A DNA stretch of 64,000 bases from Basidiobolus meristosporus CBS 931.73 (taxonomy: Eukaryota; Fungi; Basidiobolomycota), in contig MCFE01000138.1 in NCBI GenBank assembly GCA_002104905.1, positions 62,001-126,000 of the forward strand, given 5' to 3'. Below, in pieces: positions 6,142 to 64,000 of this stretch (positions within the stretch are counted from its first letter, which is position 1; each line of letters starts with the position of its first letter). A program made the translations under genes and the position numbers. The notes beneath the pieces are model-generated. The model was not told the origin of the DNA, ran no database searches, and saw nothing but the letters and a program-made list of their open reading frames with translations.

Positions 6142-9100
6142 CTAAAGTTGAGAGGGTTCTTCTGAATCTCTTTTCTTGTGATACCAATATCTTGATGGTT
6201 CAGTATTATCAGCAAATCTTGCAAGCTTGAGTCTGTCCCTATGCACTAAGTCTTCCCGGATATTGCCTTGTTTGTCCACCAGTTGGTTAGTTGCAAATGG
6301 ACATTCTCTGATGATCTTGAATGGTCCTGTCCATTGTGGCTCAAACTTCTTCCAAGTGATGTTTCTTAGCAATACAAAGTTCCCTACTGTCAATGCTTCT
6401 GGTGTTATAGTCTTATCAAATCTCTCCTTCATCTTTTCTGCAATTTGAGATACTTTGGTATGTGCCTCTTGACATCTTTGTTCCAGTTGCTGGTGTCTAC
6501 TTGGCTGACTGAGTTCATCTTCTAAGGTGTCTGTAAGTTTTGGTTGTGTGAGATCTCCTGGAATCCTTGGTTCACATCCATAAACTGAGTAAAATGGTGA
6601 TTGCTGGGTGGTGTTGTGAACTCTGACTCTGCATGCAAAGAGTGCTTGGTCTATATACTCATCCCATCTACTGACAACTCCATTTGCATACTTGGTCAGC
6701 ATTTTTCCAAATAATCCATTAAACCGCTCAGTGACTCCATTAGTTCTGGGGTGATATGCCAAGGTTTTCAAGTGTCTGATCTGCTGCATTTCCAGGTAAG
6801 CCTCTAATGTCTTTGCCATAAATTTGGCACCTCTATTGGATAAGATCTCCACAGGGCATCCAAACTTCATCAGGATCTCATGGTAAATGAAACTTGCAAC
6901 TTCTTGTTCACTGGCTATTGGTACAGCTTTAGCAACTGGCCATTTAGTGGTGTGGTCAATTGCTACTAGGATCCAACGGTTGCATTTCCTGGTAGTTGGA
7001 AGTCTTCCAATAAAGTCATTTCCCCATCTCTTAAATGGTCTTACAGGCTCCAAAGGGAAGAGTTTGGCAATTCTTTGTGGCTGGCCTTGATTGATTTGGC
7101 AGTTTGGGCATGTTTTCACTAGCTTCTCAATTTCTTGTTTCATTCTGGGCCACCATGCTCTGGCTTTCACAAGACTATAGGTTCCATCAATCCCAAGATG
7201 TCCATATCCATTGTGTAGCTTATGTATTAAATCCAGGCAAGCAACATAAGGACAATAGGCAATAGGGCTTCCATCAACAATTTGGTAGAGTGTTTCATCC
7301 TGTACAATAAATTTGCTGGCTTGATCACGGATTATCTTCTTGATATCTTCATCCACCTCATTAGGAATGGCTTGGTCCTCCAAGTACTTTGGTAATAGGC
7401 TAGGCCAATCTGATTCATGCGCCAAGTTGAGTTGTGCAACTTGATCTAATCTTGATATGGCATCAGCAACTGTGTTGTTTTTTCCAGGACAGTAGACAAT
7501 CTCCAGGTCAAATTGCTGAATGTATTCACTCCATCTTGTCATTCTTCTAGAGAGTACCTTCTGAGTAAATATATACTTGAGGGAGGCATGATCAGTCTTC
7601 ACAGTGCATTTGACTCCTTCAATATAGCATCTCCATGTCTTCAAACAGTGTATTATAGCAAGCATCTCCTTCTCATGGACTGGATAGTTTTGTTCTGCTG
7701 AGTTCAGCTTCTTGGATTCAAAGGCAACAGGGTAGTCCTTTCCCTTGTGTTCTTGACTCAGCACTCCACCAATGGCATTATCTAAAGCATCTGTGCACAG
7801 AGCGAACTCTTTTCTGAAGTCTGGTATTCTTAAGCTTGGCAGCTTAGCAAGTTCATTCTTGAGTGTCTGGAAGGCAGTCTCACAAGCTATGTCCCACTTG
7901 TAGGTATTGTCTTTCTTGAAGATATCAGTTAAAGGGCCTGCAATACTTGCAAAAGACTTGACAAATCTCCGATAATAGCAAACCATTCCAAGGAATGATC
8001 TGAGTTCTGATATGCTATGGGGCTGCTTCAAATTCTTGATTACTTCCACCTTCTTGGGGTCTAAGGTTACTCCTGTGCTATTCACTATGTGTCCCAGGTA
8101 TTCTACGTGTTCCTTGAAGAATTCACACTTGGCTAGCTTGACATAAAGCTTGTTCTCTCTTAGCTTCTTCAAGACCTTTTCAATGTGCACCAAGTGATCC
8201 TCTTCTGTCTGCTGTATATTGGTATATCATCTAGGTAGATTATGACAAACTTGTCTAAGTACTCCTGGAAGACAGTCTGCATCAGGGTCATGAAAGTTGC
8301 AGGGGCATTGGTGAGACCAAAACTCATGACTAGGCACTTGTAATGTCCATATCTGGTCCTGAATGCTGTCTTAAGGATGTCTTCTGGCTTCACCCTAATC
8401 TGGTTGTATCCTGACATGAGGTCAATCTTGCTGAAATTAGTGGCTCCATTAAGTTGGTCCAAAAGCTCATCAATCCAAGGTATGGGGTACTTATTCTTGA
8501 CAGTAACTGAGTTCAGGGCTCTGTAGTCAATGCACATCCTAAGTGTTCCATCCTTCTTTTTCACAAAAAGCACTGGTGCTCCCCGGGGTGACTTGCTGGG
8601 CCTGATGTATCCTTGCTCCAATAGCTGATCAGTTTGTCTCTTCATTTCCTCCAATTCCAATGGACTCATTCTGTAAGGTGTCTTGCTCACTGGAGGGCTA
8701 TCTCCTGTGTCAGTGGCATGATCCACATCTCTGATTGGTGGTAGGCTTACAAGCTCATCAGGAAACACGTCCATATATTTCTTCAAGAGAGTCTTGACCT
8801 ACTGGGGTGCTGGGGTAGCGGAATCCTCCTGTAATACAGCCATGAGGAACATCTGGGTACCTTTTCTAAGTGCTCTACAGAACTGGGTCTTGCTAAGTTC
8901 ACTTGTCGCACACATACTGGAATTGACCAAGTTGAAATCCAGCCTGGCAGGGAATAGCTCATAGGTCTTGTTGTCTTTTTGGATCTGAGTAGCATGGGTT
9001 CTCCAGTTGATTGTTGGATTACAACAAAATAGCCAGGTTTTTCCAAGTACAAGGTCAAACTTGCAGTTCCCAAATATATAAGCCTGTAGGTCTTCTTCAT

Positions 9101-10274
9101 AGTCATTGATCTTCATTCTTACTGGCTGGGTAATACAGTTGATTATGTGAGAGTTCCCATCAGCTGTGGAGACTGAAGTTGATTTGGTAGGTTCCAAATT
9201 GATTCCAGCTTTCAAGGCAGATTGCTCTGATATGTACTCATGCGGTGCTCCTGAGTAAATCATGATCTTGGCAGGCACTCCATTGATTACTCCATTTAAG
9301 TACAATAACTTCCCTGAGTTTGAAATCATTTGGGACAAGTACTCTTCTGTCATATTGAAGGTGAGTTCCAAGTCTTCTTTAAGCTCATCTTCTACATTAC
9401 TGTGTTCATGGGACTCAGTATGGTTGAAGGTTCTTGTTGGCTGGTGTCCATTTCTTCTCTGAGGGCAGTACTTTGCAATATGTCCTTGCTGGTGGCAATT
9501 GAAGCAAAGTCCTTTCTTCTTACATTCTTCTGGGGTAGGTTTCCTCTGCATAGCAACTATTTCCATTGGTACTGCTTCTGACTGTCTTTTTTCATAATGA
9601 TTGTAGCCTTTCTGATTAGTCACTGTAGGCTTCCCAACTCCAAACATAGCTGAGTCATAGTCAATGGCAATCTTGATGGCTTCTTCAATAGTCTGAGGTC
9701 TTTGGTAATTCACTTCCTTGCGAGTTCTTTCTTTCAACCCATCAATAAAGTATTCAACTTGATCCAAGGGGTCCATTCATTCAATTTGTCCAAGTAGACA
9801 TCTGTACTCATAGATGTATTCTTGTACCATTCCTTTCTGTCTGAGTGTCTTTAACTTCCTTCTTAGTAGTGTCTGCTGGTGTGGAGGTTCAAAAGCATCC
9901 TGAATTTCCTACACAAACTCATGCCAGGTAGAGATTGTAGAGCATCCCATCATAGTGGCTGACCTGATTGTGTTGTGGTACCACTGTAAAGCTGCATCTG
10001 CCAGGTAAGAAGCTGCATAATGCAACTTGCTCTCTGGAGCAATTCCTTTAGCTTTAAAAGCTTCTTCAATCTGAAAGAGCCAAGTTCCCAGGTTTTCATT
10101 GACTCTGCCATGGTACCGGTTGACCTTCACACTAAAGTTGCTCTTGAGAGGGCTTTGCTGGCTCTGAGCCATAGTAGTCATTCCTTGTTGCTGTTGGCTG
10201 AGGATCTGGAGTAACTGTTGCTGTTGGGCCAGGATTTGCTGCATGGCATTCTTCCATTCTTGATTGTCCAACAT
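6142..10274 (-). pseudogene. Gypsy gag-pol, disrupted
   Basis: Zinc knuckle CFNCHQQGHIAKYC; protease IYSGA (D to Y); RT YLDD; RNase H; integrase HHCC and DDE with SDRG changed to SNRG; GPF motif. In-frame stops at 9909, ~9779 and 8799, and a frameshift near 8200. Confidence 0.93.
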
Positions 10275-24738: not shown

Positions 24739-25623
24739 TTACTCTGCATAATGCTCCAGACACATTTCTCTCAGTGGATGTCTTCTTGTATGAGCATACT
24801 GTGCATTAATAAGTATCTTGACTATTTTACCTATTCTGCTGTTTTCACCTATATATGACTTTCCTCTGTATTTACCTGCCAATATGCTGAATCTCTTCAG
24901 ATATCCAAATGTGTGCTCTACCCTTACTCTGAAATGATTAAATATCTCATTGTAGAGCTTCTGCTTCCTGCTAAGCACACCATTCCTTGGCTTCCTATAA
25001 GCTGTAATACATCCTAATCTCTGACAATCCTCTCCTATATAGGCCAAGTCTGCCATACATTTCTCCCCTCTACTGAGTTCAGGATGATTCTCTACCCAGA
25101 GTGCTTTGTCATGCCTACTTCCAGCAAATGGCCCACTAAACCAGATGATGTTACCCTCAATGTCAGACAGTGCTTGAAACTTCACACAGTGTGCCTTGTA
25201 CTTGCCAGAATAAAAGTGCCTCTGCCCTCTAGAAGGTCTGCCAATCCTCACTGGGAAGGTATCCAAAATACTCCTGATATGGAACCTGTTGCTGAACACT
25301 CTGGGATATGGAAGTCTATTGGAGCTACTGAACCTAGTATTCCAAGCTTGCTCCAAGTCATTCATACCCTCTGCAAGGTGGTTCTCCATTGCTGTCAGCT
25401 GGGAATGAAAGCTTCTAGGACTTTTGTTGCCATGGACGGTGGGATGAAACCTTGTAGGGCAATAGTTCTTGTAATAGCAGAGAAGCTTAACAAGGGATCT
25501 CCTTGAGTAGATTGGGGTTGATGGTCTACAGTACTTGGAATAGATCTCCTCCAGTGTGTCAAAAGGAAATCCAGTGGTAGTGATGAGATTGATGAGAAAA
25601 GACCATTCAGATGAGTAAGTCAT
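24739..25623 (-). CDS. PIF/Harbinger-like DDE transposase (DDE_Tnp_4 family), 294 aa, open
   Basis: Motifs ILDTFPVRIGRP (D), YSGKYKAHCVKFQ, GPFAGSRHD, MADLAY (D) and RVRVEHTFGYLK (E). Confidence 0.93.
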   Translation of the reverse strand: MTYSSEWSFLINLITTTGFPFDTLEEIYSKYCRPSTPIYSRRSLVKLLCYYKNYCPTRFHPTVHGNKSPRSFHSQLTAMENHLAEGMNDLEQAWNTRFSSSNRLPYPRVFSNRFHIRSILDTFPVRIGRPSRGQRHFYSGKYKAHCVKFQALSDIEGNIIWFSGPFAGSRHDKALWVENHPELSRGEKCMADLAYIGEDCQRLGCITAYRKPRNGVLSRKQKLYNEIFNHFRVRVEHTFGYLKRFSILAGKYRGKSYIGENSRIGKIVKILINAQYAHTRRHPLREMCLEHYAE

Positions 25624-31562: not shown

Positions 31563-34066
31563 TTACCCACTACTACCTTGGGTATTCCACATATAGTTTG
31601 AATCAAAAAAAACTATGGCCTCCTGCTTACTAACCTCTACAAACGCGCACACCTGCCGCAATTGACATACTTCTATCACCTCAACTTTACTGCTTTTTAG
31701 TGTGAAACTTGCAAAGTTGCCATATACCTTGTACTGCTGGTAGCATATACATCTTGCAAACATATGCTTGGTTATTGCCACTTCTGCCCTGAATACCTCC
31801 TGAATATTGGCAAAGAACTTCTTGGTATTTAGCCAATATATTCCTCCTCCCTGCTGGATTCTAGTCCCCCTTATAGGTGCGCTCTGGCTTTTGTTTGTGT
31901 GAATTCTGTATTGAATGATGTAGAAGTTGGCTTATGACCACAAGAAATCCAGCATATCTTGGTGGAGTTTCCTGATAAAAGTTAGTTGCTTGTTGCACCC
32001 AACCTAACTTTGCATTACTTAACTGATTACCCACGCATTGGGGCTGCTTAGCTTCTTAATGCCATAGGCATAGGTGTCTCCATGTGCACATTTGTCCTCA
32101 GTGTTTTCCAACTCTTTCTGGCTGCCCTTCATGTGCCAACTCATCACATCCATGATGTACTTGAAGGTAATACTCTTGATGAGATTGGGATATGGTAGTA
32201 CCTGCAACTTGACTTGTCTTCCTAGCTCCCTGCACATCTGCTCTATAGGAAACTCCCAAAAGGTGAAGCAAGGCCCAATATTCTCCACACACTGTGCAAG
32301 ATGGAGTAGAGAATGGATACAGTAGTGGCAGAGATCTACATGTTCAGCTTTATGTTTGTAGTATAGCCACTCAAATCCCATCACAAGCTCCTCACACCAC
32401 AGCTGTAGATGCGTCAAGTTGGCATTGGTGATCTGCTTCTGGATAAATATTCCTACAATGTCCACATATGACTCCCAATGCTTCCAATGTACTCTTGGTA
32501 GGAATAGCTTCAGATCACCACTTGAATAAATACATATCCAGATCATCCAGTCTTTGCATTTGTATTGTTGCATATGCGTATGAATATTAATTGTAGCCCG
32601 TGAGAAGTACTTAGGGTAGCGGATACTCTGTAATATCTTGCCAATTTTTTCAAATTTCTCCGGTATCTCAAAGGGCTCATTTAGCTTGCAATGCCCCATG
32701 TACAACTTGGTCATCAGTATAGGGATATTATTGAAAAGCAAATGCATTGCTCCTAGTGGAAAGCTTTTGCTCCAACAGATACCCTCTATCTTAAGTATCT
32801 CTGGTTTCCAATTGATACCATATTCTGGCCAATGGCTTATAGCTTGCCAACTTTGCTGCAATTGCATGCTTACTTCTGTACGTTCTCTCTGTGGAAAGAT
32901 GATGTTCTTAGTGCTGGTGTTTGGGTAATAATAATGTGTGTGAGTTCTGGAGTAAATCCCCTGGATCTCACACATTTGACAGCAATACCATCCATTGTGC
33001 CTGGAAAAACCTGCTATCTTGCTGATGGCTGGGGTATCTCCAATGCAGATAATAATATGCACTTTTACATGATGGCCATTCACCATTATCCTGCTGGAAA
33101 GCATACAAAATACATTAAGCAATGGATACAGGTAGCTATCTGGGTTGGATGGTGATTTAGGCCCAGATACCAGTGAGACTACCATCAGATTATTGCTCTG
33201 ATACTGTAAGATGGGTGGCAGATTCAGATTGACAAGAATCAGTGGCCAGTAGGATTTGCTGGATGAGTACTTGCTTAATGAGAATCCTTCCAGTGCTAAA
33301 GCAAAGGCATGGTCATACATACCTTCAAAGTAGCCCTTGCTTCTTAGCTGTTTGTAATGTTTGCCATTGAATATACTGGATATGTTTGCGCATGATTGAT
33401 ACTGAGTGTGGTGCTGTATAGCTTTGCAATATTTGTTGGGCTGCATCAGCTTCCTCAGACGGGGTATGACTGGAATATACCCGGAGTGTGAACAATGTTT
33501 TCCCTCAATGGTGGTGGATTCCTGACAATTTGGACATGTTGCAATGGTAGCATTTTTGGATATGAATGCCATGCAACTGTTAACACATGCTGGAATTAGG
33601 ACAGTCTCTGGATCATATGTTGCCAGCAGCATGACGGTTGTCCACTTGTACCATGTACATGGTAAGTTGCATCCTGTTATGATTTTGGCAAGAAGCAGTA
33701 ATAATTCTCAAAGCCCCCATTACTGATATTAGTGAAAACGCACTACTTCTCTAGCCACAACATCACATCATTCACCAGTAAATGAATTACTGGGCTCACT
33801 TGGCTCCATAAAGTATCCTTGGCATTTGTCTCAATGGGTGTTGTCTCATCGCATATAGGGATTTGACCGGGCTCATACATGGTACTGTTGTTAGGGGAGA
33901 TAGGCTCAAAATCCATCAGGGAACCTTCTTTGTCAGAGCTATCACTCTGCATGCCATATTCAGAAGGCTGAGGTGAGCCTAAAGGTGTCACAAACTCACC
34001 TGACTCAGTTTGCACAAGTTGACAAAGATGGCCAGGTGCCAATATAGAAGTATCACTGGCTGGCAA
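31563..34066 (-). pseudogene. CACTA/EnSpm-type (Tnp2-like) transposase with a few lesions
   Basis: 537-aa open segment with PACVNSCMAF...CPNC, SYWPLILVNLNLPP, ICIGDTPAISK..GF..HNG..CC..C and IHSLLHLAQCVENIGPCFTFWEFPIEQ; stop/frameshift near 33740 and 32019. Confidence 0.85.
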
Positions 34067-56130: not shown

Positions 56131-56212
56131 GGTGAGGTGGCCGAGTGGTCTAAGGCGCTGCGTTCAGGTCGCAGTCTCTTCGGAGGCGTGGGTTCGAACC
56201 CCACCCTCATCA
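56131..56212 (+). tRNA. tRNA-Leu(CAG), intronless
   Basis: Acceptor stem GGTGAGG/CCTCATC, D-loop TGGCCGAGTGG, anticodon stem CTGCG/CGCAG with loop TTCAGGT, long variable arm, GGTTCGAACC T-loop, TTTT at 56217-56220. Confidence 0.97.
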
Positions 56213-56582: not shown

Positions 56583-57080
56583 CTAATTGTATTGAACGTT
56601 TTGCTCTGGACAATCTTCTACGCATTGCATCTCTGCCACAGGGGTTGTGTATTGTATATCTTGGGTGGGCTGCATCAGGACGTAGGGAGAGAAAGAACTA
56701 TCTTCCAAGTGTTCCGCTCCCTTTTGCTTAGCATATTCTAATGCATTGGCCCTACCCTCCAGTTCGAGACTGGGCCCTGCTTGATACTTGACATTGAAGC
56801 CTTTGTTGCTGTTGGCGTTAGCAATGTTCAGGTTATCGTGCTTTCTGGTCACCGTGGTGAAAACCTGGCGCAATAACGGGGATTCGACATTCGTCGTCTT
56901 AACGACAGGCAAAACTCGAGCGTTTTGGTAGCAACCGCTCGCATACTGTGCACATGGTAAGCTGCGATAATGAACCCCTCTATACTCGCGAGTACATGGA
57001 GAAGAACAGCCGATTGGGGCAGCAACGGCAACTTGAAGAGCGGCAAGGCTTAGAATCACTGCTACGGTAGTAGAGCGCAT
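56583..57080 (-). CDS. Secreted family B protein B4, 165 aa, diverged paralog
   Basis: Signal peptide MRSTTVAVILSLAALQVAVA; 18-aa identity PLLRQVFTTVTRKHDNLN with B1/B2; conserved cysteines. Confidence 0.85.
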   Translation of the reverse strand: MRSTTVAVILSLAALQVAVAAPIGCSSPCTREYRGVHYRSLPCAQYASGCYQNARVLPVVKTTNVESPLLRQVFTTVTRKHDNLNIANANSNKGFNVKYQAGPSLELEGRANALEYAKQKGAEHLEDSSFSPYVLMQPTQDIQYTTPVAEMQCVEDCPEQNVQYN

Positions 57081-60162: not shown

Positions 60163-60211
60163 AATAGGGTGAATAGGGTGAGTAGGGTGAATAGGGTGAA
60201 TAGGGTGAATA
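60163..60211 (+). repeat. 9-bp tandem repeat (AATAGGGTG)x5
   Basis: Five consecutive units, one with a mismatch. Confidence 0.95.
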
Positions 60212-60593
60212 ACCTTTCACAAGATTTGGTAATATGCTATCATGAAATTCACACACAAGTATTACTGTTGGAAGCACTAGTCTAGGTTGATGATTCTATA
60301 AACAGAATAGCAAGCATCAAACAGAAGCACTAAGACTAATTAGTGATTATAATGGGATCCCAGGCCCTGACCTTATGGGAATAAATAGTCACATACATCT
60401 ACTAGTGTATTTATACTTATTGTCCAGCATCCACCAGAGGTTTTTGACAGAGTAGCACTTTTATTTATACCGTTGTAAATGATGTGTAGCATGTATGGTT
60501 AGAATACCCCAACATACACTGTTTACTTCTTTATCCAGCTACTTTGTATACTTGCATTATTTCTAGCATTCAACATTGAACGTATTGGATTTA

Positions 60594-60776
60594 TTAATCA
60601 TCAGATACAGCATCTTTGGCCAGACTTGCATCCAGTGTCCCAGAACACGGATCTCCAACGCACAAGGAGCCTCTTGAGTTCCCTTGGGCTTGGCACGAGA
60701 GAGCATCTACGGAGCCGGAACTGGAGCTGGCCACAAGGAAGGCGACCATCAAGGAGACTGCAAATTTCTTCATCAT
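60594..60776 (-). pseudogene. Defensin-like peptide copy 1, frameshifted
   Basis: Matches copy 2 up to GSLCV; a 22-bp deletion at an AAC microhomology then removes Cys3 and shifts the frame. Confidence 0.88.
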
Positions 60777-61874
60777 TGTTTTGATTGAGAGCTTAGTGTG
60801 TGAATGATGTCTAGCAGCAAGGTTAGCTCAATATATAGGCGTCATTTCCCCATTGTTGCACATACTTTCGTCGATAGTCGCTGTGGCTAGCTCTACATAT
60901 GGTTGTGCAAGAGAAGAAGGTTACCTGGGTAATGTAAACCAGCTCAGAAGGTTACCTTGGTAATGTAAACCAGTTCCAGGAAATTATATGTATTGATGGC
61001 CAACATCAAAAGAGCAGTAGCATTGAAATGGTATTTCTCGTATGGCATAGTGTCACCTCTTTATTCAAACATATAAATGATGCGGCAATAATATGCAAAA
61101 TCAAAGGTAGCAATCCTTGAACTGGGCTGCTCATCACATTTTGTGCCACACAGCTTTTGCCGTGCAATACACTCATCTACAAAGAATGTTCTAAATGCAG
61201 TACCACACGGCTGAAAGTAAGCCTTCCCTGTTAGTTTCAAGTGTAGAACTACTTTGCCGATAGTTCATTAGATAATTTATTAGGTAGATACAACATCTTT
61301 GGTGTCCCGGAATACCAACCTTTGACCAATACCTGAAGGGCGCAAGTAGAGAGTGTCAGCACAGCTGGCCTCAATAATAGCAGGTAAGGAGAGTTGCAAC
61401 ATGTAAAGTAACCAAGTACTCTTGAAGCATGTGCAATATAGGTCATTACGTACACTGCTAATTATCCTTCCTCTGTGCAAAGCACTCACTCAACGGTTGT
61501 TGTGGCTAGGCAGTCTGTAACAATGGAATATGTAAACCAGCTCTATACACGAATAACAATGTAATGGTTACATTCACTCTACTTATTGACAGTTATAGCA
61601 ATCATGATATACAGCATTGTTGCTTATACAGTGTAAATGATATATAGCACTGTGGCAAACAACAGTTCAATAGATGGTTCCCAATACAGTTGCACATATT
61701 AAGCCCCAAAGATGAGACCAGCATATTTTGCTATACTATTGACTCCCATTATACTGCTATATAGTTGCTTCTTGCTTCTTAAGCACTAATCTCCGTATAT
61801 ACAATACGGCTTGTCTCTAGCATCTGCATTGTCATGTGTACGTTCCACATTGAACGTACTGGATTTATTAATCA

Positions 61875-62072
61875 TCAGATACAGCATCTCTGGCCGGACT
61901 TGCATCCGGTATCCCAGAGCACGGATCTCCAACCGGTGGGGCAGCTACCGGAAACGCACAAGGAGCCTCTTGAGTTCCCTTGGGCTTGGCACGAGAGAGC
62001 ATCTACGGAGCCGGAACTGGAGCTGGCCACAAGAAAGGCGACCATCAGGGAGACTGCAAATTTCTTCATCAT
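61875..62072 (-). CDS. Secreted six-cysteine beta-defensin-like peptide, copy 2
   Basis: Signal MMKKFAVSLMVAFLVASSSSGSVDA plus LSCQAQGNSRGSLCVSGSCPTGWRSVLWDTGCKSGQRCCI (C-x10-C-x4-C-x12-C-x5-CC); TATATA ~55-60 bp upstream. Confidence 0.85.
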   Translation of the reverse strand: MMKKFAVSLMVAFLVASSSSGSVDALSCQAQGNSRGSLCVSGSCPTGWRSVLWDTGCKSGQRCCI

Positions 62073-63149
62073 TGTTTTGATTGAGAGCTTAGTGTGTGAA
62101 TGATGTCTAGCAGCAGGGTTGGCTCAATATATAGGCGTCATTTCCACATTGTTGTACATACTTTCGTCGATAGTCGCTGTGGCTAGCTCTACAAATGGTT
62201 GTACATGAGAAGAAGGCTACCTGGGTAATGTAAACCAGTTCCACAGAGCTGCAGCATTGAGATGATGTTAATACACAAAAACAAATTGGCAATCCATGAA
62301 CCGGGTTGCTCATCAGACATGCTATTGTGTAGTGGTAGTCCTACACCAATAAAGCATCTTTGGCCTCTAACTGGAAAGTAAATCAAGACCTCAAGATGCA
62401 TAGACAATCTCGATAATTACGTTTACTGTAACATGTACATTCCATGACTGTTGTGGCTAAGCAGTCTGTGACAACGGAATGAGTGTGGGTACATTGATTA
62501 CAGTCAAATCTACCATTTGAGACTTAAAGCGGTAATGATATTCAATCGGGATATGCAAAGTCCTAGGTAACACTGTCGCTTATAAAGCATAAATGAATCT
62601 TGATTTTTAGGCCTAGATGCTGCTATTTGCAATAACACGCAAGTATTTGATATAACTTTAGTGTTTGTAACGATTTGCATTGATTTTGCTACAAGTAAAT
62701 ATAGATATGAGATTGCTGTCCCACTTGGGAATTGAAATATGTTGTGTTCTTTACGACGACTTAGCCGATAATTCATTAGATAATTTATTACGTAGATACA
62801 ACATCTTTGGTGTTCCGGAATATCAAACTTTGACTTACGCCTGAAGGGCGCAAGTAGAGAGTGTCAACACAACTGGCCTCCATAATGGCAGGTAAGGAAA
62901 GTTGTAATATGTAAAGTAAGCAAGTCCTCTTGACGCATGAGCAATACAGGACATCATGTACACTGTTACTTATCCTTCCTCTGTGCAAAACACTCACTCA
63001 CATAAAGAGGAGGCTAGCATATTTTGCTACACTTTGGCCATAGTTACTGCTTGCTTCTTAAGCGCCAATCTCCGAATACTCTGTCCTGTTTCTAGCATCT
63101 GCATTATTGTGTGTAAATTCAACATTGAACATATTGGATTTATTAACTA

Positions 63150-63347
63150 TCAGATACAGCATCTTTGGCCAGACTTGCATCCAGTATCCCAGAACACGGA
63201 TCTCCAACCGGTGGGGCAGCTACCGGAAACGCACAAGGAGCCTCTTGAGTTTCCTTGGGCTTGGCACGAGAGAGCATCTACGGAGCTGGAACTGGAGCTG
63301 ACCACAAGGAAGGCGACCATCAAGGAGACAGCAAATTTCTTCATCAT
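63150..63347 (-). CDS. Secreted six-cysteine beta-defensin-like peptide, copy 3
   Basis: Same layout; the mature peptide differs from copy 2 by one residue (L/F). Confidence 0.85.
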   Translation of the reverse strand: MMKKFAVSLMVAFLVVSSSSSSVDALSCQAQGNSRGSLCVSGSCPTGWRSVFWDTGCKSGQRCCI

Positions 63348-63491
63348 TGTTTTGATTGAGAGCTTAGTGTGTGAATGATGTCTAGCAGCAAGGTTAGCTC
63401 AATATATAGGCGTCATTTCCCCATTGTTGCACATACTTTTGTCAATAGTCGCTGTGGCTAGCTCTACAAATGGTTATGCAAGAGAAGAAAG

Positions 63492-63545
63492 TTACCCGGG
63501 TAATGTAAACCAGCTCAGAAGGCTACCTGGGTAATGTAAACCAGT
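63492..63545 (-). promoter_or_regulatory. Palindromic TTACCCGGGTAA motif in a 31-bp tandem pair, upstream of the defensin-like gene
   Basis: Related motif starts 145 bp from the ATG in all three copies (60921, 62217, 63492); duplicated with period 31 in copies 1 and 3. Confidence 0.55.
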
Positions 63546-64000
63546 TCCACAAAGCTGCAGCATTATGGCATAGTGGTACAGAGTTAATGTGGTATTAATA
63601 CACAAAATCAAAATCCATAAACCGGGTTGCTCATCAGATATGCTATTGTGTAGGGGTAGTTCTACACCAATAAGGCATCTTTGGTCTCTAACGGGAAAGT
63701 AAATCAGGACCTCGAGATGCATAGACAATGTTGATAATTACGTTTACTGTAGCATGTACATTCTATGGCTGTTGTGGCTAAGCAGTCTGTAACAATGGAA
63801 TGAGAGTGAATACCGTTTGAGACTTAAAGCGGTAATGATATTCAATCAACATATGCAACGCCCTAGGTAGCACTGTCGCTTATAAAGTATAAATGATATA
63901 TAACATTGTTGCACATGGTCTGCGATAAACACTAGCTAGAGAACCCCAAAAATACCGATGAATCTTGATTTTAAATCTAGATGCCGCTATTTGCAATAAC

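Follow-up and report, generated by a model that had tools for sequence, protein, structure and literature searches.

A tandem array of three gene copies in the window

In this study, we analyzed a window of 64,000 nucleotides (contig MCFE01000138.1, positions 62,001 to 126,000) from Basidiobolus meristosporus CBS 931.73; all positions are counted from its first letter. Using a repeat finder, we detected three minus-strand gene copies with start-to-start spacings of 1296 and 1275 bp. The copies were 93-96% identical over 300 nt, and the repeat unit was at least 300 nt long. Reading of the open reading frames (ORFs) showed that two copies are intact, in agreement with an earlier sequence-only reading that had described three copies at these distances. 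The features of the array were as follows.

63150..63347, minus strand: copy A, intact intronless gene for a 65-aa precursor, from ORF reading and paralogue alignment (putative signal peptide, residues 1-25, 63273-63347; mature 40 aa, 63153-63272; stop codon, 63150-63152)
61875..62072, minus strand: copy B, intact gene for a 65-aa precursor (putative signal peptide, 61998-62072; mature peptide, 61878-61997)
60601..60776, minus strand: copy C, pseudogene (frameshifted 60-aa ORF, 60594-60776)
63398..63410, minus strand: TATA-like box of copy A, CCTATATATTGAG in gene orientation, about 55 nt before the ATG
62123-62135 and 60827-60839, minus strand: TATA-like boxes of copies B and C
63139..63144, 61864-61869 and 60590-60595, minus strand: AATAAA of copies A, B and C, 6-11 nt past the stop codon
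63486..63547, minus strand: two units of a 31-nt upstream direct repeat (repeat family D5), core GGTAATGTAAACCAG on the plus strand
60915-60976 and 62211-62241: further 31-nt repeats, two units and one unit, respectively
61287..61316, minus strand: decayed gene 3'-end remnant in the B-C spacer (..QRCCI, then AATAAA-like sequence; repeat family D3)
62795-62824: second decayed 3'-end remnant, in the A-B spacer

The precursor consists of a hydrophobic N-terminal signal sequence ending in Val-Asp-Ala, followed by a 40-aa peptide that begins about two residues ahead of the first Cys (C1). This layout suggests cleavage of a signal peptide after Val-Asp-Ala and secretion of the product. The mature peptide has the framework C-x10-C-x4-C-x12-C-x5-CC-I, with Trp48 and Trp53 and a net charge of +3. 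A 40-aa peptide with this Cys spacing, two Trp residues and a positive charge had been claimed before, and the ORFs gave the same result.

An alignment of 14 copies, including those of the paralogous loci described below, was used to examine the array further. In copy C, 22 nt are missing at the junction 60659/60660, right after Cys39-Val40, which causes the frameshift; the deletion is bordered by a 3-nt AAC microhomology. The TATA-like box was kept about 55 nt before the ATG in 14 of 14 paralogues. The AATAAA was also common to all copies, and the sequence further downstream diverged rapidly with indels. The 31-nt upstream repeat differs between paralogues in its number of units and is a candidate cis-regulatory element.

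The JGI models of these genes contain a GT-AG intron that drops the final Cys-Ile and appends 12-13 residues, and model P0004 joins two adjacent genes and ends in CCI. We rejected this intron because its "exon 2" is not conserved, differing by indels and frame among paralogues, because it is absent in the last copy of every array, because P0004 itself keeps the CCI end, and because homologues elsewhere end at CC-[IV]. Judged by these comparisons, it is the unspliced reading of 65 aa that is conserved.

Paralogous loci and purifying selection

The last 8 kb of the window was 97.6% identical to contig MCFE01000763.1 of the same assembly, and three further contigs aligned with it over kilobases at 93-98% identity. 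The locus is therefore one of several segmental duplicates. The window and the four paralogous loci together hold 14 copies, 11 of them intact. The copies sit in threes, with one array reduced to two by a contig end. The frameshifts are independent, and different arrays have lost different copies; loci L001 and L003 contain one frameshifted copy each.

Since upstream-type sequence runs to the window edge, it had been proposed that the array may continue. This was not borne out by L003, whose sequence shares 97.6% identity with the last 8 kb of the window: the 9.3 kb past the equivalent of the window edge contain no extra copy, so the array probably stops at three copies. Locus L002 likewise holds only three.

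We then calculated pN/pS over the 11 intact copies. The ratio was about 0.19 for the precursor and 0.17 for its mature part, which indicates, at the level of the coding sequence, real genes maintained by purifying selection. A look-up of the exact 65-aa products returned no record in the assembly collection and no transcript evidence.

A peptide family in four fungal lineages and some arthropods

A full phmmer scan with the 44 C-terminal residues against 1.84 billion representatives gave 25 matches. Among them, the two top matches, P0005 and P0006, as well as P0017, P0021, P0023 and P0025, were discarded as repeat-driven and lacking the Cys framework. The remaining matches and those from a profile word search were taken as the family. 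Its signature is C-x(9-12)-C-x(4-7)-C-P-x-G-[WYF]-R-S-V-F-W-D-x-G-C-x(5-14)-C-C-[IV], and the loop lengths are 9-12, 4-7, 12-20 and 5-14. The six Cys (in 20 aligned homologues) and Val51 were invariant, and Pro45, Gly47, Asp54 and Gly56 were nearly so. The CC-[IV] is the exact end of 30 of 34 mature domains, and the remaining four extend two residues beyond it. Each domain has 2-7 aromatic residues. The net charge has a median of +3 and spans -3 to +6, with nine of the 34 members at zero or below. Most members have an AxA-type signal-peptide end 2-3 residues ahead of C1, and the ascomycete members have a propeptide ending in KR or AR.

Members were found in Basidiomycota (Pleurotus eryngii, P. 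djamor, Leucoagaricus, Coprinopsis and Cyathus), in Mortierellomycotina (Benniella and Mortierella) and in Ascomycota (several Penicillium, Aspergillus lentulus, A. sclerotialis, Thermomyces, Fusarium chlamydosporum, Aphanocladium and Pseudocercospora musae). The mature peptides of Aspergillus lentulus and Aphanocladium album are identical. Arthropod members were found in the sciarid flies Bradysia odoriphaga and Pseudolycoriella hygida and in the springtail Orchesella dallaii. A word-based protein search yielded a single cluster, that of B. meristosporus CBS 931.73. The host of the window, which had been called apparently fungal, is indeed Basidiobolus and not an animal; the peptide is not an oddity of this fungus, as its family spans four fungal lineages and some arthropods.

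Searches of existing collections were also performed. The family had no Pfam match; in particular, no defensin model, including those for beta-defensins and big defensins, matched the window proteins at E<=10 or 20 members at E<=1. A sequence-profile search of the PDB was empty. The ESM Atlas yielded nothing usable for the window protein, and the neighbours that it gave for an ascomycete member were all below threshold. The PAF/AFP antifungal proteins (PF11402) gave no Pfam match and appeared only as a weak language-model neighbour (0.75). A literature search of incomplete coverage found no description of the family, so that a prior account elsewhere is possible. These comparisons of sequences indicate that the peptide is no orphan and that its family was previously unnamed.

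Predicted fold of the family

To obtain a predicted structure, we modelled two members with AlphaFold2 from shallow alignments of 37-38 sequences. Model 1 covers the 44 C-terminal residues of copy B (61878-62009; 38-sequence alignment) and reached a pLDDT of 84.9 and a pTM of 0.58, with two paired strands containing C2 and C5/C6. Model 2, of a sciarid peptide, reached a pLDDT of 77.4. DSSP assigned no helix of four or more residues in either model. The two modelled members are about 50% identical to each other and gave the same exclusive match list.

Foldseek with model 1 against the PDB matched almost only beta- and alpha-defensins and sea-anemone defensin-fold toxins, with a best E of 0.38 and TM values of 0.50-0.59 to hBD-1. 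In VIA-align against 48,161 PDB representative chains, all 22 matches of model 1 with Z>=2 had the trans-defensin fold. They included crocodile, avian, human and mouse beta-defensins, alpha-defensins, both big defensins, crotamine, platypus defensin-like peptide, sea-anemone peptides, tick carboxypeptidase inhibitor and helianthamide. The 20 matches of model 2 were likewise all of this fold. The best match had a Z of 3.1 (36 residues, 2.8 A), a low absolute score, as expected for a peptide of 40 residues. The alignments of model 1 covered 28-39 residues at 11-30% identity, and those of both models 28-40 residues at 11-32%, with about 8-10 identical residues in the best ones; such structure-based identities would fit aligned Cys residues. 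CBM1, knottin and CS-alpha-beta structures were absent from the Foldseek and VIA-align matches, and the BFVD viral fold library gave no match.

These models predict a small beta-sheet fold whose only structural likeness is to the beta-defensin (trans-defensin) type, and suggest three disulfides, C1-C5, C2-C4 and C3-C6. The beta-defensin-like nature proposed from the sequence thus held for the predicted fold, which is the only one that both models matched, and did not extend to membership in a defensin family of Pfam. The peptide had also been set apart from CS-alpha-beta defensins such as plectasin, and we came to the same view because it has no CxxxC/CxC framework.

Comparison with known defensins

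Vertebrate beta-defensins (hBD-1/-2, AvBD3/AvBD11 and CpoBD13) were the best structural matches of both models, with Z of 2.8-3.1 and rmsd of 2.1-3.0 A over 33-36 residues. They share with the family the six Cys with a terminal CC, the Pro right after C3, a size of about 40 aa, a precursor of signal and mature peptide, and tandem gene arrays. They also share with the sciarid members a phase-1 intron that directly precedes the mature-peptide region, whereas the Basidiobolus genes are intronless. The loops of beta-defensins follow approximately C-x6-C-x4-C-x9-C-x6-CC. The C2-C3 and C4-C5 loops of the family fit this spacing, but C1-C2 (9-12 residues against about 6) and C3-C4 are longer; crotamine and the sea-anemone members of the fold also vary in loop length. 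The family further differs in having no detectable sequence homology to vertebrate beta-defensins, a strongly conserved, aromatic C3-C4 loop, many members that are not cationic, and hosts that are fungi and a few arthropods rather than vertebrates.

Big defensins carry a hydrophobic N-terminal domain before their beta-defensin-like domain. Those of oyster (Cg-BigDef1) and horseshoe crab share the Cys framework of the C-terminal domain with our peptide and were among the structural matches (6qbk, Z 2.2-2.3; 2rng, Z 2.0), but the peptide has no such N-terminal domain and no Pfam match.

Plectasin, copsin and eurocin are used against competing bacteria. Like the family, they are small secreted fungal peptides with six or more Cys, some with propeptides, but their CxxxC/CxC framework is absent here, and their alpha-helix is absent from the predicted models. 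By analogy, the fungal CS-alpha-beta defensins are likely the ecological counterpart of this family.

A probable extracellular role in defence or competition

The most likely reading, which we regard as probable, is that of a secreted peptide family with a predicted beta-defensin-type fold and an extracellular role in antimicrobial defence or competition. The array would consist of tandem paralogues of an intronless gene that encodes a secreted, disulfide-rich peptide, two of them working and one dead. Removal of the 25-residue signal peptide after Val-Asp-Ala would release the 40-aa peptide with six Cys and a terminal Cys-Cys-Ile, which may then act outside the cell on other microbes. The setting would be substrates rich in microbes, for example gut contents, dung, compost and soil. 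Decaying, microbe-rich substrates are common to the carriers, and the precursor has the layout of secreted defence peptides. The members with a net charge of zero or below (9/34) argue against a simple cationic membrane-disrupting peptide. Together with the conserved C3-C4 loop, these neutral and acidic members point to a specific target rather than charge-driven membrane damage. The nearly invariant loop probably recognizes one conserved target, instead of the peptide acting through charge alone.

Known proteins of the beta-defensin fold are antimicrobials, toxins or enzyme inhibitors. The main rival therefore accepts the fold and gives the peptide another function: it could poison or deter arthropods or nematodes that graze on the fungus, bind to an ion channel, or inhibit an enzyme. 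The non-antimicrobial proteins of this fold (crotamine, sea-anemone toxins, helianthamide and tick carboxypeptidase inhibitor) were among the structural matches, and both the charge range of -3 to +6 and the conservation of the C3-C4 loop across phyla, which suggests a specific protein or ligand target, would suit such a function. However, fungus-feeding arthropods themselves keep the gene, which is odd for an anti-arthropod toxin, and the shared decaying substrates fit microbial competition. We consider this rival unlikely, though the most serious one.

The predicted fold itself may be wrong. The peptide would then have a different, possibly new disulfide-rich fold, and its likeness to beta-defensins would be that of a shared Cys pattern, by which AlphaFold2 may have been steered. 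The weak Z and E values, the alignments of 37-38 sequences and the long C1-C2 loop are consistent with this. We nevertheless judge it improbable, as two members of only about 50% identity gave the same exclusive match list at pLDDT of 85 and 77, and the layout of beta-defensins is matched by the Pro that follows C3 and by the placing of C2 and C5/C6 in strands.

UniProt automatically names P0001-P0004 and P0035 "CBM1 domain-containing protein", which raises the reading of a divergent stand-alone CBM1-type module that binds cellulose or chitin through its aromatic residues. CBM1 has a wedge fold with four Cys, a 9-residue loop and two disulfides, C1-C3 and C2-C4. The size of the peptide, the first half of its framework (C-x10-C-x4-C with Gly) and the 2-7 aromatic residues per domain resemble this module. 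In contrast, the peptide has six invariant Cys, a terminal CC and a C3-C4 loop of 12 rather than 9 residues; Pfam CBM_1 (PF00734) did not match the window proteins at E<=10 or 20 members at E<=1; neither model matched a CBM1 structure; and homologues in other fungi do not bear the name. CBM1 identity was rejected on the Pfam and fold searches and is very improbable. The public annotation of these genes is wrong twice, in its mis-spliced models and in the name CBM1.

Finally, a non-functional origin as chance ORFs in a subtelomeric repeat or as decaying pseudogenes, which the frameshifts in one of three window copies and in one copy each of L001 and L003 might suggest, is strongly disfavoured by the pN/pS of 0.19 over the 11 intact copies, the promoter and polyadenylation motifs kept while the flanks diverge, and homologues with six invariant Cys in distant fungi and arthropods.

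Arthropod genes and probable horizontal transfer

We next examined whether the arthropod copies are genuine. In P. hygida the gene is part of a 192-Mb chromosome, and in B. odoriphaga it is on a contig of 2.8 Mb. A phase-1 GT-AG intron interrupts both sciarid genes in the Asp codon that immediately precedes the mature peptide, and the Bradysia intron holds stop codons; P. hygida was represented by exon 2. L007, a Logan contig found in several runs, has an intron of the same place and phase, and over 106 nt its coding DNA shows 74.5% identity with the Bradysia gene. No other relative outside Basidiobolus comes closer than the mature peptide of L007 (77% identity). Because of the chromosome and megabase-scale contigs and the sciarid spliceosomal intron, the sequence data indicate that the arthropod copies are resident animal genes and not contamination. 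A possible link to the sciarid salivary antimicrobial peptide BhSGAMP-1 was also considered and found unsupported, as the word search with the P. hygida protein returned only itself.

A maximum-likelihood tree was constructed from 34 mature domains (43 columns). An ascomycete-type clade, which includes Cyathus, was recovered with support of 97/97, and the Basidiobolus, arthropod, agaric and Mortierella sequences formed a polytomy, so that the tree favours neither direction of transfer. Horizontal transfer between fungi and fungus-feeding arthropods is likely, in either direction.

In the reviews and primary papers covered, fungal defensins have been placed only in the cis (CS-alpha-beta) superfamily (PMC8877149), and trans-defensins have been listed only as animal peptides (PMC5234102). 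We tentatively propose, as a possibility that we hold to be somewhat doubtful, that the present family is the first trans-defensin family (C1-C5/C2-C4/C3-C6) native to fungi, occurring in four lineages and shared with sciarids and springtails by horizontal transfer. If this is true, either animals did not invent the beta-defensin fold, or an immune-type effector has passed between fungi and arthropods feeding on them. Were a conserved fungal family to have a beta-defensin-like fold, the origin of that fold would have to be reconsidered, and the antimicrobial repertoire of fungi would gain a new scaffold. The fungus gnats and the springtail that carry the gene, with its introns in the sciarids, provide a compact case of probable gene exchange between fungi and arthropods.

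Structure of the array and its spacers

The spacers of the three-copy array and the region upstream of each copy contained the following features.

61287-61316, minus strand: decayed remnant of the 3' end of a peptide gene (..QRCCI and an AATAAA-like stretch)
62795-62824, minus strand: a second remnant of the same kind
60915-60976, 62211-62241 and 63486-63547: 31-nt direct repeat, core GGTAATGTAAACCAG

As each spacer carries one decayed 3'-end remnant, today's 1.3-kb array unit may have been derived from two older, shorter units. The 31-nt repeat was present as one or two units 140-200 bp upstream of every ATG in the array, and the number of units differed across the 14 paralogues in the window and four further Basidiobolus loci. 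This repeat is a candidate regulatory element.

Surroundings of the array

The following features were located around the array or elsewhere in the window.

60165-60209: short minisatellite made up of five units of 9 nt each (TAGGGTGAA/G), directly downstream of the array
56583-57080, minus strand: 165-aa ORF neighbouring the array
56131-56212, plus strand: tRNA gene (Rfam, 55.7 bits)
6142-9776, minus strand: Ty3-type gag-protease-RT-integrase element
24739-25623, minus strand: DDE_Tnp_4 (Harbinger-like) transposase
32019-33632, minus strand: tnp2-family (Transposase_21) transposase

The minisatellite units contain a telomere-like TAGGG. The tRNA gene sits in the interval that separates the peptide array from the secreted-protein arrays. 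The array is flanked by the 165-aa gene and by 174/181-aa genes, and the same flanking genes were found in the paralogous loci L001-L003. The 165-aa ORF matched the Pfam mussel Myticin pre-proprotein model below threshold (E 0.0057, 17.3 bits; cut-off 28.5), and this match is probably due to chance.

Relationships within the peptide family

Homologues from arthropods and from a Logan contig were as follows.

L005:10001-10268 and L013:10001-10285: sciarid flies (Pseudolycoriella and Bradysia, respectively)
L007:196-453: Logan contig
L006:12954-13142: springtail

The Pseudolycoriella, Bradysia and Logan homologues all have a phase-1 intron that interrupts the Asp codon directly before the mature peptide. 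This common intron and the springtail homologue point to horizontal movement of the family between fungi and arthropods. Among fungi, the mature domains of Aspergillus lentulus (Eurotiales; P0045) and Aphanocladium album (Hypocreales; P0046) are identical, and the basidiomycete Cyathus striatus (P0039) falls within an ascomycete-type clade. These sequence relationships suggest either extreme constraint on the peptide or transfer among fungi.

The public gene models of the Basidiobolus members (P0001-P0004 and P0035; GCA_002104905.1) are mis-spliced or fused, and their UniProt label, "CBM1 domain-containing", was not supported by the Pfam model.

Three tandem family domains were observed within one precursor from an AT-rich eukaryote (L012:433-843; P0008). 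In the metagenomic protein P0012, the family domain forms the C-terminus of a module of ~130 aa.
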